The notes beneath the pieces are model-generated. The model did no database searches and was not told the origin of the DNA. It saw only the letters and a program-made list of their open reading frames with translations. A stretch of DNA of 64,000 nt from Ministeria vibrans ATCC 50519 (lineage: Eukaryota > Protista > Filasterea), in NCBI GenBank assembly GCA_943704425.1, contig CALSCP010000863.1, positions 1 to 64,000 on the forward strand, written 5' to 3'. Of the stretch, positions 10,087 through 21,649 are shown one piece after another. Numbering within the stretch: the first letter of the stretch is position 1; each line of letters starts with the position of its first letter. Both the position numbers and the translations under genes were made by a program.

Positions 10087-10124
<38 letters not shown>

Positions 10125-10330
10125 TACAAAAGTGTAGGGTTAATAGGAAAGGATGGCAAGAGAAGGAGTATGGACGGGCATGGAGAGAGGGGACGGCGGG
10201 GTGTGCGTACCAGGCCACCCTCAAGCAGTTCCTTTGCTTTGGCTTCGGCAACGCCCCCAGCCGAGGCAATGGCTGCCTCTTCAGCGCTAGGCAGCCCCAT
10301 GATGTCACGCAGATCCGTTGATCCCGCCAT
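7488..10330 (-). CDS. DMAP1: DNA methyltransferase 1-associated protein 1 / SWC4 (NuA4/SWR1 subunit, SANT domain), multi-exon
   Basis: Motifs DLRDIMGL, RPKGMSREVFNL, WTWQPFENPARTDGLKL-HW, YPFAKFNK, YTDDEYRAHLTSEQWTQRETDLLVSLARQYDLRFIPIADRY, IEELKERYY and PTEAVCNEFDGLRDDIIELLEL. Confidence 0.93.
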
Positions 10331-10468
10331 GCTTGGTGTAAACAAAAAAAAAAAATGTGTGTGTAATGTTGTTGTTTTATTCTCTGATCTCGCGGAAGGA
10401 AACTTATCCTCGGTGTATCCTCGCGAGCCATCGAGACAGTGACGCCACTTTACACTTCAGTAAATAGT

Positions 10469-10503
10469 GAGTACTGACTAATGAGTACTCCATACGGAGT
10501 ACT
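10469..10503. promoter_or_regulatory. Three GAGTACT motifs at 14-bp spacing in the DMAP1/HSF-A divergent promoter
   Basis: GAGTACT occurs at 10469, 10483 and 10497. The palindromic AGTACT core also occurs in other upstream regions (49058, 62925). Function is inferred only. Confidence 0.35.
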
Positions 10504-10689
10504 GAGTGACACTTGGGGCGCTGACAGAGCTCATGGCTCAATCAAAATTGTGTGACATATGTGAAACTCACTCCCACATATACCCCGAAAAAAAGTAATC
10601 AGTTCGTTACTCATTTTGTTCTGTGCTCGCCTTTCGCCTCCGCTCGACACCTCCGTCTAAACCCGACCAACGCACACGGCGCCAGCACC

Positions 10690-12775
10690 ATGTCACAGTC
10701 GGTAGGAGTTGTTTGGACCTTTTTTCTAACAACATTCACGCACGCACTCGAATCGCCCCTTACACTGCTTTAACTTGACAGAGTGGTACCGCACGAAACT
10801 CCATGGAGTCGTCCGACTCACGCGGGGATAATGCACCTGGAAGTGATACCAAACAAAGGGCAATGGAATTGCTTGGTCATCTTCCCTACAACGCCGACGA
10901 GGTTCACCCTGATATGCACGGATTATGGCAGTTGATCAATGACAGGGTATGTTGCCGGCAAAAATGCGCGCATCGGACGCTCTGAACGTGAGAAAAGCTC
11001 ACCGTGAGAACTAAACTGTTCGGTTTTAACACCTCTACAGCAATCGCATCAATGGCTCTTCTGGAGTGCCGATGGCCTCGCCTTTCTTGTAAAGTACTCC
11101 AAGGAGTTTGAACGGTCCCGTTTGCGCTTCTACTTTCGCGTAAGAAACGAGACAGCGTGCAAAGAGTGTGTTTCGGAATGCAGCTTGGTAACACCTCGTT
11201 CCGTCGCTGTTCATTTTCGCAGAAGGCAACCGTTCGAAGCTTTGTCCGCAAGCTTGAAGCGTTCCAATTCAAAAGGTATGCATGATCCTTGGCTTCTGAC
11301 CTCCAAGAACACCCTGTGGAAGGCAGAACCATTGGGGGTGTCGACCTTTTTTTTTCTTTTTCGTTTCGTTTCTCGCTTTGCTTTCTCAGCTCTGACCTTC
11401 CATTTCTTGCCATAGAGTCGAATTCAGCGCGGGCGAGCAGCCGGAAGGCGATTGGGTGAAGCTGATGGTACGCCGGCGCAGTTCTTTCCAGCGCATTGCG
11501 CTCGTCTCAACCAGCGTCCTTTTTTTTTTGTGTGTTTGTGTGTCTCTTTTTGTAGCATCCCAACTTCCAGCGCGAGCAGCCATCTCTGCTGCGCGACATA
11601 CAAGTGTCCGAAGTAACCCATTCTCCCGTGTGGCGAGTCACCTCAGCGCAAGAGTAAGTCGTTGCGTCTTTATTTGTCTTTTTTTTTTTTTTTTTTCTCC
11701 CCGCTCCCCCAACGTGTCATCCCACCCTCCTCGGCCGTTATTTCAACCTTCTTTATGCACCACCACCTCGTTGGCTTTCAATCCATCGTCACTCCGTCAC
11801 CATCTATGCGTCCTCACGTTATTTGCACATTGTTCAATGTGACGTCAGTATCACTATTCGGCCTTTTATTATTCATTTATTATAAATTTCCTTTTTCACT
11901 CCCGTCGTCGTAGCATGGAACGGGCATTATCCGATAAAGCAAATCGAGTGGCGAAACGCACACACGCTGCCTCTCTGCAGCAGCGCACTCCACCCGCAGC
12001 ACACAAGCGAAGCAACTCACAGCAACAGCCACAGCAGCATCAAAACGTTCCTTATCAGCATGATTCTCAATTGACTTTGGTCAATATGGACGATGGCCTG
12101 CCATGGAAACGGCAACGAACTGTTATCATGTCGATGGGCCCATTTGATACCGAGTCGTCGTGTACATCGCTTGCCTCGCCTGTCGTGAGTACGGCGACGC
12201 CGGCCGGTGTGAGCTCGAATGCCTTTGGCACCGCTTGCGGAGTGCCTCTATCACGCGATCCCAGTCTGCCCGCCGCCACCACCTCCGCCACTTCCTTATC
12301 CTCCTCTCGTCCCTCGTACCTGCCCCCGCCATCATCTTCTACTCCACTCAGGTCCACGCGACTCCAGCCAAGAAGCAGTACCTCCAGCACAGGTCATATG
12401 GCATCAACAGCATCGCTCTCCCCGCACGAGCCCCAACAGACCTACTCTTCTCTTGCCTCTGGTCGCACCATCAACAGCGCCGAGACGTCACAGTCGTCGC
12501 TCTACTCGCTCCTTGAATCTTCTTCCGCCTCCTCCCTCTACTCTATTCCACCCTCCTGCACTGCTGCAGTCCAGCCTGCCTGCTCGACAACCGCCATCAC
12601 CGAGGGCGCTGGTGGCGGCAACACCTACTTGTCCCCCTCCCATTTCTCGTGTGCTCCTTGCCCTTACCCTAGCCAACAAGACATCCTCTTTTTTGCGCCG
12701 TGTCCCGCCCAGCAGCCCTTCTCATCTCACTTCACGCCCACTCCGTGGACACCGCAACAGCAGGCTCGCCACTGA
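10690..12775 (+). CDS. Divergent HSF-type DNA-binding-domain protein (HSF-A), 7 exons, S/P/T/Q-rich C-terminus
   Basis: Spliced: ...DMHGLWQLINDR|QSHQWLFWSADGLAFLVKYSKEFERSRLRFYFR|KATVRSFVRKLEAFQFKR|VEFSAGEQPEGDWVKLM|HPNFQREQPSLLRDIQ...; the last exon is ORF 11915-12775. This matches the HSF DBD pattern (LW.L..D...I.WS.DG..F; SFVRQLN.YGF; HP.F.R....LL..I). Confidence 0.85.
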
Positions 12776-13342
12776 GCGAGACCAAACATTTAACTGAAGA
12801 ATACACCACACACAATTCCACCATCCCTCTGACACTACCTACAGCCGCTCAGATCTCGGTCTGGTCGCAGCATCAAAAAATTGACGAATGAGAAGATGGA
12901 GAGGGGAAAGGGGAGAGGGGAGAGAGGAGAGGGGAGACAGAGAGAGAATGAGACGCTCGAGACAATTGAGACACAACAAACAAATTTCTGGCCTCTTTAA
13001 ATTCTTGCAGTTGTCTTCATTCCTCTTCTCTTCACGACAGACTGAATCTCTCTTGTCGTCTCAGAGTCTTGACACTATAAATTATGAAAAGCATTCGTAT
13101 TTGTTCCGTCGGATCCCCGTTGGATCTAACCACCGAAATAGCAATTACGCAAGTAAAATAATACGATTATACGTAACACAAATCAAAATTGTTCTTTGCG
13201 TTGGAGAATAATTGAAAACGGAAAGCCCCTTCTTACAAGACTTCGGAGCCACCCGCCTAGGTGGTAGTTTTTTTTGAGTTGTGTTTGGGTCGAGTGACAG
13301 TTTGATCCTATCCTGACTTCCCTCGGCGCCTTTCACCACCTT

Positions 13343-15751
13343 ATGGCATCAGATATGAGTGTCGCAGCACCCACCTATCGCGCAGCAGACATGAATTTGC
13401 CATTGTCGACCGTGGAGGCATCCAGTCACACCGTCTCTGACTTGCTCGGTGACTTTTCATACAATCAGTCGCAGATTCATGCGGACATTCGCGCCCTGTG
13501 GCAGATCCTACGCGACGAGGTACGCTGTGCTGTGCTGTGCTGCATGTGGCCTCATTTTGTGCCGCGCCCCGTTTGCTCTCTTATCGTGTCTCAATTTTTC
13601 CCGTTGTTATCATCGCTCATATCCCCAACAAAAAAAAAAAAAAAAAGTCGCTTGTTTTCTCGGAAGTTGTGCCGTTCCTGACGCTTAGTTTGCCTCTTCC
13701 TGTAGCAATCGGCGCCTTGGATCCATTGGTGCAACGAAGGTCGATCCTTCTGTCTTGTGGATGACAGCGAGTTTGTCAAAGGGCGACTGCGCTTTTTCTT
13801 CAAGGTTGATTCCACGCCTCTCGGTCGCTTTTCCCCTCTCAACATTCTTCCACTTCACCTGTAGAAAGTCACCTTTCGCTCTTTCTTGCGAAAGTTTGTC
13901 AATCTTGGCTTTACCGAGTAAGATGCATTCTGGTTTGGGCCAACCCCCGCCCCGCCGCATGCCCCTCCCTGCACGCACTGAAATCCTCTCACTCTCACGC
14001 GCACCCCGCCTGGTTCACTTGTGTCAACCCGTTGGGCCCCATGGCTAGCCATAATCTTCCCGTTCCGCTCGTGTTTTTGTTTTGGAACTCAAATCCCGTG
14101 GACCCAAATACAAAATGCATTCCGTCACGCGCCAACACACCCTGAACCGCGTCTCCCATTGGCCCAACTCCCATCTACCTGAGCCGTGCATTTTGTTCTT
14201 TTATCGTTGTGGGCGACAAGACGTCTCTGCTTCGCACGCCGTCAGCGAAGGAGACGAGTCAGTTTCATTCTTTTTTTTTTTTTCAACCGCTCGCCTCAAC
14301 CGCGAGCGAGCCCGCTCTGGGGTCTGATTTGTTTCTTTGTTGCATCGTCTACTGCCATTGCTTGATATCAATGATGTGCTCCTTTCTGTGGAAATGCGTC
14401 CAGCATCATTGGGCACGAGCGGGAAACGGGCAAATTTATCTCACTCGGTTTGTTTATTTTTTGCGTTTTTCGTAGAAGTCTAATTCTCCCGACGCCAACA
14501 GATCCACGCGTTTGGTCTGTTCTCACGGTAAGCCAAGACCATGCAATAGTATGTGTGACTCCACTAGGCGTTCTCTCCGGCGGAATGGGTCGCCTCAGAG
14601 TAGTGGGAGTTGAACAAGTTGTGCTCAGATACAAAATTGCCATTGCGCTTTCTTTACAAGGCGCTCTTTACGAGCCTTCATTCCCTGTAATGAATGTGTT
14701 GCACATTGTCGACGCCCAGCTCGGGAGTTGGTCGTTTTTGTGCGCAAGAGCGAATTATTTCTTATGTTTGGTTTTGTGACGAATCACCAAACCAGTCGTG
14801 TTTCTGAACTGTCTGTCTACCCTACACCGTCTGTTGCTTGTTTTTGTCATTGGTTCACGTTTTGGTGTGTTGCGCGAAGAGAGTGACGGAGTGGGGAGTG
14901 ACTGAGAAAAAAAAATACAAATTCGCTTCGCTTTGCTTTGTACTTCTTGTGCGCGTGTCGTTGGACGCCGCGAAGAGAATACACGCGAAGAAGTACATCA
15001 CTACCTCCCACGCTCTCTTATCGGCTCTTGTGTTGTTTGTTTTCTGTAGCACGAGTGGTTTTGTCGTGACTCTCCCGAGTTGCTCTCACACATCTCTCCC
15101 ATTGGCGAAACGACGCTCTTACGCAAACGTAAACTTCTCATGAGGTGAGTCACAACGGGTTGTAGCGTTTCCTTTTTTTTCTTCTTTTGTTTCTCTTTCT
15201 CACTCCTCTCTCTTTGTCTCCTCTCTCTCTCCCTTTCTCTTTCTCTCTCTCTCCCTCTTTGTTCTTTCAATGGCTCTAGCAGCAACAGCCAAGATGAAGG
15301 GTATGGGCACGAGAAGCACGAGGGCAGCCACAGCAGCAACGACGACGACGAGCACACGCAAATGCATCAGTATCAACCACAACAACAACAACAACAGGTT
15401 TTCGCTGGCGCCGAGTATCGCTCCGTCCCCACGATGTATCGTGAGCCTGTCGCGCACACTGCTCACCACCCCTTCTCCGTCTACCCATCGCAACACACAC
15501 AGTCACAGCCACCACGGCCATCACGCCCCGGCCAAGTGCAGCACACTGCGTCAACCATTGCCCCTTCCACATCAACCGTGAGCATGGCACCAGCATCGAC
15601 TGTCGCCAGCGCCTACTCTCTCCCTCCTCCTCCCCCTGCAATGCTGGACTGGTTCCGATCCGCCCCTGCCCTTCCTTTCGACATCTCTCCTCTGCTCAAC
15701 GAGCACTGGCGTCTCATTCAGCTTCGCCAGGCGCGGCAATCCGGGCAATGA
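13343..15751 (+). CDS. Divergent HSF-type DNA-binding-domain protein (HSF-B), 6 exons, Q/H/P-rich C-terminus
   Basis: Spliced: ...DIRALWQILRDE|QSAPWIHWCNEGRSFCLVDDSEFVKGRLRFFFK|KVTFRSFLRKFVNLGFTE|SLILPTPTDPRVWSVLT|HEWFCRDSPELLSHI...; the last exon ends with ORF 15362-15751. Intron positions and phases match HSF-A. Confidence 0.83.
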
Positions 15752-15920
15752 GGAAACCAAACCAAAAGCTGTACAATAAAATATATTATTTTTCTCATTC
15801 ATTCAACAAACACAAAAGTGTTCCGCGTCAGACTGAAAAATATATTCAATGATAATTTTATAGACATTAATTATTTTCATAGGACATAGTTCACTCTTCT
15901 CCGTTGAATTGTTTATTGTT

Positions 15921-21649
<5,729 letters not shown>

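Follow-up and report, generated by a model that had tools for sequence, protein, structure and literature searches.

Tandem six-exon genes of Ministeria vibrans that very probably encode anciently duplicated, diverged HSF-type regulators without a coiled coil

Two genes, here named A (10803-12775) and B (13343-15751), are arranged head to tail on the + strand of the first 64,000 nucleotides of contig CALSCP010000863.1 of the filasterean Ministeria vibrans ATCC 50519 (assembly GCA_943704425.1). This whole 64-kb stretch, eukaryotic nuclear DNA with short spliceosomal introns, is referred to below as the window. Very probably, A and B are anciently duplicated tandem genes of six exons each that encode diverged HSF-type transcription regulators lacking the trimerisation coil. 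The N-terminal part of each protein, about 105 residues long, would be an HSF-type DNA-binding domain of the winged-helix kind that has diverged strongly; behind it would come a disordered tail of low complexity, probably an effector or activation region.

The coding sequence of gene A measures 1308 nt (435 amino acids) and that of gene B 948 nt (315 amino acids). The exon lengths are 144/99/53/52/98/862 nt in A and 177/99/53/52/95/472 nt in B, the intron phases are identical in the two genes (0,0,2,0,2), the intron positions match as well, and all ten introns are of the GT..AG type with pyrimidine-rich acceptors. The original prediction of two adjacent genes at these positions, with matching intron positions and phases, is thus reproduced by the exon models, and the common intron positions bear out its description of A and B as a tandem pair of paralogues. 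It had also distributed the DNA-binding domain over five small exons; exons 1 to 5 indeed encode the domain in both genes, and the correction to be made is that a sixth exon carries the tail, which is rich in Ser, Pro, Thr and Gln. As had been remarked, a list of open reading frames misses these genes, since exon 6 of A is the only part of them found among the open reading frames of at least 150 amino acids. A codon-usage log-odds score, trained on six long open reading frames in the window, favoured the frame of the model in 11 of the 12 exons and was near zero in the introns, the totals being +64.6 against about -100 for A and +43.7 against -66 and -93 for B. The possibility that A and B form one gene was rejected, as a stop codon terminates A and another one lies in frame 48 nt before the ATG of B. 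The exons of both genes, with an optional additional exon of A, are the following:

10690-10701, + strand: gene A, optional mini-exon, an alternative that would be spliced to 10782 and would add 11 amino acids
10803..10946, + strand: gene A, exon 1, with the start codon, an LLG..YN motif and helix 1; codon log-odds +10.5
11041..11139, + strand: gene A, exon 2, beta1-beta2 and helix 2; 14.9 bits with PF00447
11223..11275, + strand: gene A, exon 3, putative recognition helix 3 (SFVRK...), ending in phase 2
11416..11467, + strand: gene A, exon 4, wing/beta-hairpin segment with a conserved Trp
11556..11653, + strand: gene A, exon 5, C-terminal end of the domain, H-P-x-F-x-R ... L-L-x-x-I
11914..12775, + strand: gene A, exon 6, tail of 287 codons rich in Ser, Pro, Thr and Ala, with the stop codon
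13343..13519, + strand: gene B, exon 1, with the start codon, the LLG..YN motif and helix 1; codon log-odds +20.0
13706..13804, + strand: gene B, exon 2, beta1-beta2 and helix 2; 15.2 bits with PF00447
13865..13917, + strand: gene B, exon 3, putative recognition helix 3 (SFLRK...), ending in phase 2
14476..14527, + strand: gene B, exon 4, wing segment; TAG acceptor
15050..15144, + strand: gene B, exon 5, C-terminal end of the domain and a basic RKRK patch
15280..15751, + strand: gene B, exon 6, mostly disordered tail with two short predicted helices at its end, and the stop codon

Exon 4 of gene B is preceded by a tandem NAGNAG acceptor (14472-14480), in which a second in-frame AG at 14477-14478 would place the start of the exon at 14479. 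Both alternatives are in frame, and their products differ by one residue and one substitution. The TAG acceptor that gives a start at 14476 is most likely the preferred one, because exon 4 then has 52 nt as in A and its conserved Trp aligns without a gap.

The domain encoded by exons 1 to 5 is very likely of the HSF type, as had been proposed, since exon-wise evidence from Pfam, from the PDB and from an independent profile converges on this family. When the exons were scanned one by one against Pfam, exon 2 matched HSF_DNA-bind (PF00447) and no other family, with 14.9 bits in A (positions 15-45) and 15.2 bits in B (positions 16-45), below the gathering cut-off of 22 bits; among eight of the other exons, seven gave no match and exon 3 of B was too short to be scanned. 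As a calibration, an exon of 46 residues from one of the canonical HSFs in this genome scored 57 bits, about 1.3 bits per position versus about 0.5 for exon 2 of A and B. A profile of exon 2 made of two rows, A and B, was compared with 177,635 PDB sequences; HSF2 and HSF4 filled the top six places, with E values of 0.005-0.007, and 10 of the 12 matches were HSF-type domains. The corresponding profile of exon 5 had a single PDB match at E up to 10, namely Drosophila HSF at residues 89-103, the correct end of the domain. The exon-1 profile retrieved no HSF from the PDB, BLASTP of the 17-residue helix-3 exon against a canonical HSF gave no match, and a query of a protein atlas with exon 2 rendered no usable match.

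A crude HSF profile was also built from the single-exon canonical domain of this genome and the five PF00447 domains of P0004, a protein of 1153 amino acids that is considered below; A and B were excluded from it. It was scored on 2112 stop-to-stop fragments representing the six frames of the whole window, among which exon 2 of B ranked first, exon 2 of A second, exon 5 of A third, exon 3 of B fifth, exon 3 of A seventh and exon 5 of B sixteenth. The scores for exons 2, 3 and 5 were 13.9, 5.4 (positions 32-62) and 9.1 bits (75-92) in gene A, which sum to 28.4 bits, and 14.6, 6.8 (46-61) and 2.3 bits (75-90) in gene B, which sum to 23.7 bits. The profile coordinates are colinear across these three exons of both genes (12-45, 46-62 and 75-92), and nothing else in the 64 kb scores comparably. 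The ranks are given without a P-value because the exons of A and B had originally been picked by eye for their HSF likeness, and no mixed multi-exon profile was used, as MAFFT misplaced the exon fragments against the canonical backbone. Compared with canonical HSF1, HSF2 and HSF4 (PF00447; PDB 5D8K, 7DCI, 6J6V, 1HKS), A and B have the same domain layout with colinear motifs: helix 1 has L-W, the strands W..G..F and helix 2 L..YF, helix 3 opens with SF[VL]R, and the end of the domain shows a Trp followed by H-x-x-F-x-R...LL..I.

In contrast to the canonical factors, A and B have no HR-A/B-like coiled coil after the domain. A heptad score was defined as the fraction of a and d positions occupied by L, I, V or M in proline-free windows of 28 residues; the best value was 0.38 in the tail of A and 0.12 in that of B, against 0.75 and 0.62 in the two canonical HSFs of the genome. 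No hidden heptad-rich, polar and proline-free segment was found in the + strand frames of 10600-16000, except in exon 1 of B. AlphaFold2, run with no alignment, gave for the tail of A a mean pLDDT (predicted local distance difference test) of 42 and no secondary structure. For the tail of B it predicted helices at tail residues 119-127 and 136-154, much shorter than HR-A/B, with block means of pLDDT around 80-87 for tail residues 131-150, and disorder or low confidence elsewhere. Neither tail contains a Pfam family. The earlier statement that no heptad repeat follows the domain therefore stands on the heptad scan, the predicted tail structures and the lack of a hidden heptad exon, while the statement that the tails are disordered holds for the whole tail of A and for most, not all, of that of B. 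The two helices that end the tail of B (15634-15748) are short, amphipathic and confidently predicted, and have no counterpart in A; they might serve as a small motif for interaction or activation.

Helix 3 of human HSF1, HSF2 and HSF4 reads in all three cases ASFVRQLNMYGF. A and B agree in SF[VL]R, which aligns with the SFVR of these proteins. The rest of the canonical consensus, SFVRQLNxYGF, which to our knowledge is nearly invariant among opisthokonts, is not kept: Lys replaces Gln in both proteins, and Asn is replaced by Glu in A and by Val in B. Both helix-3 segments quoted in the original prediction, with the Arg kept and these substitutions, are present. In our own alignment, moreover, the position equivalent to Arg117 of HSF1 is non-basic in A and B. 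The invariant Arg71 of HSF1 provides the main base specificity through bidentate hydrogen bonds to the G of GAA; no residue other than this helix-3 Arg contacts the bases of GAA directly, and Asn74 and the C-terminal Arg117 make water-mediated contacts to flanking bases (PMC8379338). As judged from the alignment, A and B keep the guanine-reading Arg, which is the main reading residue of canonical HSFs, and lose the auxiliary ones. Because the Arg is kept and the auxiliary residues are lost, the comparison argues for a site with a GAA/TTC-like core and an altered flank preference rather than for a wholly new site.

Proteins with such features are known elsewhere. Of the 17 HSFs that Phytophthora infestans expresses, 10 have no coiled coil, and the factors whose binding specificities were measured (10 of the 17) bound TTC/GAA (PMC11267843). 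Like A and B, the oomycete coil-less HSFs are lineage-specific paralogues that occur beside coiled-coil-bearing HSFs and have no predicted oligomerisation coil; unlike them, they belong to another eukaryotic supergroup, and no specific kinship is detectable. P0004 resembles A and B in that its HSF-type domains are diverged and have lost the canonical RQLN of helix 3, and differs from them in having five tandem domains instead of one per gene and in lacking the LLG..YN and RLRF motifs. The five domains of this protein carry very different recognition helices. Loss of the coil and a variable helix 3 thus have precedents in the HSF-type superfamily (PMC11267843; P0004). The proposal that A and B probably bind sites other than heat shock elements (HSEs) is unsupported, because they keep the GAA-reading Arg, because coil-less HSFs occur in P. 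infestans, whose assayed HSFs bind TTC/GAA, and because helix 3 varies in P0004. No HSE-like TTCnnGAAnnTTC was found near A and B, and the window as a whole shows no enrichment of this pattern.

The vertebrate HSF5, HSFY and HSFX are, like A and B, divergent members of the HSF family; they are tissue-restricted and not tied to the heat-shock response. These three proteins keep the RQLN helix. HSF5, for which a preference for shorter HSEs is described (PMC12366260), has its domain in the PDB (8ZYS), and this domain was not matched by the exon-2 profile of A and B at E up to 10.

Two canonical HSF genes are present in the same genome. The one on contig C373 (L002:380-1735) has a single-exon domain followed by a heptad-rich segment. 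In its helix 3, Cys-His replaces the consensus Leu-Asn and His replaces Gly; since this factor has His at the Asn74 position, that position is not fixed even in the canonical factor of this organism. The other gene, on contig C348 (L003:2100-2830), has introns that differ in position from those of A and B, and it encodes a coiled-coil-like segment after the domain, directly behind which lies a short run of N.

Protein identity between A and B amounts to 35-47% in exons 1, 2, 3 and 5 and to about 12% in exon 4, and a comparison of the two genes at the DNA level found no similarity left; on these grounds the duplication is dated as old. The RLRF[YF]F[RK] segment reported for the pair occurs in both genes. 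The motif that had been described as lying upstream, LLG..YN, is likewise present in both, but its place has to be corrected: it sits directly before helix 1, which the last part of exon 1 encodes. The whole assembly (29.7 Mb in 2860 contigs) was searched with profiles of exons 1, 2, 3 and 5 and contained no further copies, only the two of the window.

Outside this genome, an HMMER search of 1.84 billion representative proteins with the exon-2 profile rendered three matches at E up to 0.001. P0002 and P0003 are internal-repeat proteins and were rejected as noise, and P0004 is significant only through its summed weak matches. No close relative was therefore found among these 1.84 billion proteins in a search of low power: by calibration on the PDB, about 36 bits would be required to detect a relative with one domain, so that the search could reveal fairly close relatives at most. 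A first metagenome scan found no relative, and the match of a second one (L004), antisense to a 934-aa open reading frame on a high-GC bacterial contig, was rejected as due to chance. A word search with the tail exon of A returned only P0001, which comes from a metagenome fragment of the same species (L001) and has no spliced model, and a word search with a canonical HSF domain gave nothing usable; such searches are blind to relatives at this distance, because A and B themselves have no common 5-residue word in exon 2. The view of A and B as an old, lineage-specific subfamily fits the presence of only two copies and the absence of a close relative, with the reservation that the latter comes from low-power, single-exon searches. 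A lineage-specific origin is consistent with these sequence comparisons, by which it is weakly tested.

A mechanism can be outlined on this basis. Helix 3 would enter the major groove, and A and B would most likely recognise GAA/TTC-like half-sites, because the Arg of this helix would still read guanine. Without HR-A/B the canonical trimer would be impossible for either protein, so that monomers, weak dimers or complexes with partners would be the probable forms in which they bind short sites. The presence of Glu in A and of Val in B at the Asn74 position would give the two proteins differing preferences for the flanking bases. Both would act alongside the two canonical coiled-coil HSFs of the genome and not in their place. 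It could also be the case, although we consider it unlikely, that A and B form a small lineage-private subfamily that has left the mode of binding HSEs as trimers and works as monomers, or as an A/B heterodimer joined through LLG..YN, reading new sites that are set by the Glu or Val at the Asn74 position; they would then be a natural example of a rewiring of HSF specificity.

Several observations weigh against A and B as functional HSF-type regulators without a coil. The gene models are ab initio, with splice junctions predicted from the sequence only, and B is weaker than A: the codon log-odds of its exons 2 and 4 are near zero, one of its donors is the non-consensus GTTGAT, and two of its introns exceed 500 nt. 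Positions 1-930 of L001, an ENA metagenome scaffold, correspond to 11821-12900 of the window and carry the last intron, exon 6 and the 3' untranslated region of gene A in near-exact form. The tail in this scaffold differs by an in-frame deletion of 156 nt (12074-12229), by two substitutions, and by a 2-nt deletion that shifts the last ~18 codons, and a further deletion of 10 nt lies in the 3' untranslated region; these differences reflect either allelic variation in a weakly constrained tail or assembly noise. Such features are those expected if one or both loci, B being the more likely candidate, were decaying duplicates that are not expressed, and the low-power searches have found no relatives that could show conservation. 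Decay is nevertheless quite unlikely, because neutral decay over the distance that separates A from B would have broken the reading frames, whereas both genes, at 35-47% identity in most domain exons, keep six open exons, GT..AG sites, intron phases and core residues.

Ab initio models, and two introns of B long enough to hide exons, would also leave room for A and B to be ordinary trimeric HSFs with an oligomerisation region in exons that were missed. This is highly improbable: in both genes exon 5 joins in frame to an exon that reaches a stop codon, the only heptad-rich segment in the + frames of 10600-16000 is in exon 1 of B, the AlphaFold2 models of the tails show no long helix, and the long introns of B are unique sequence in which neither repeats nor a coding signal were found. 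Finally, although no single exon reaches the 22-bit cut-off of PF00447, the profile of the helix-3 exon retrieved no HSF from the PDB and had SPT5 as its best match, the protein atlas gave nothing, and the winged-helix fold is predicted from exon-wise matches, it is very unlikely that the resemblance to HSFs is fortuitous or that the domain belongs to another winged-helix family, given that separate exon searches converge on HSFs at colinear positions with the correct spacing, that exon 2 matches no other family, and that an unrelated HSF protein of five domains, P0004, was retrieved from 1.84 billion sequences.

Should the models of A and B as coil-less HSF-type genes hold, the HSF-type genes of this genome would number four, the pair with its altered recognition helix being added to the two canonical, coil-bearing ones. 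This would provide a data point on the diversification of the HSF family near the animal stem, as well as a compact pair of domains with which to test which residues of helix 3 set the preference for flanking bases. Taken alone, the pair would be a case of routine lineage-specific divergence in a large and well-studied family, in which coil-less and helix-variant HSFs are known in stramenopiles.

Some minor features were observed around the two genes. Three GAGTACT cores lie on the + strand at 10469-10503, with an exact spacing of 14 nt and with conservation limited to the core, in the 260-nt gap between a minus-strand open reading frame (start at 10431) and gene A. The paired pattern has 4 matches genome-wide, 2 of them here, versus 8 for the reversed control, and the triple array is unique; it may be a candidate cis-regulatory array, as either a target or a control site. 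Further upstream of gene A, about 40 nt at 10087-10126 form a poly(A) run, and a purine-rich, GGGGAGA-like tract at 12880-12940 directly follows the stop codon of this gene.

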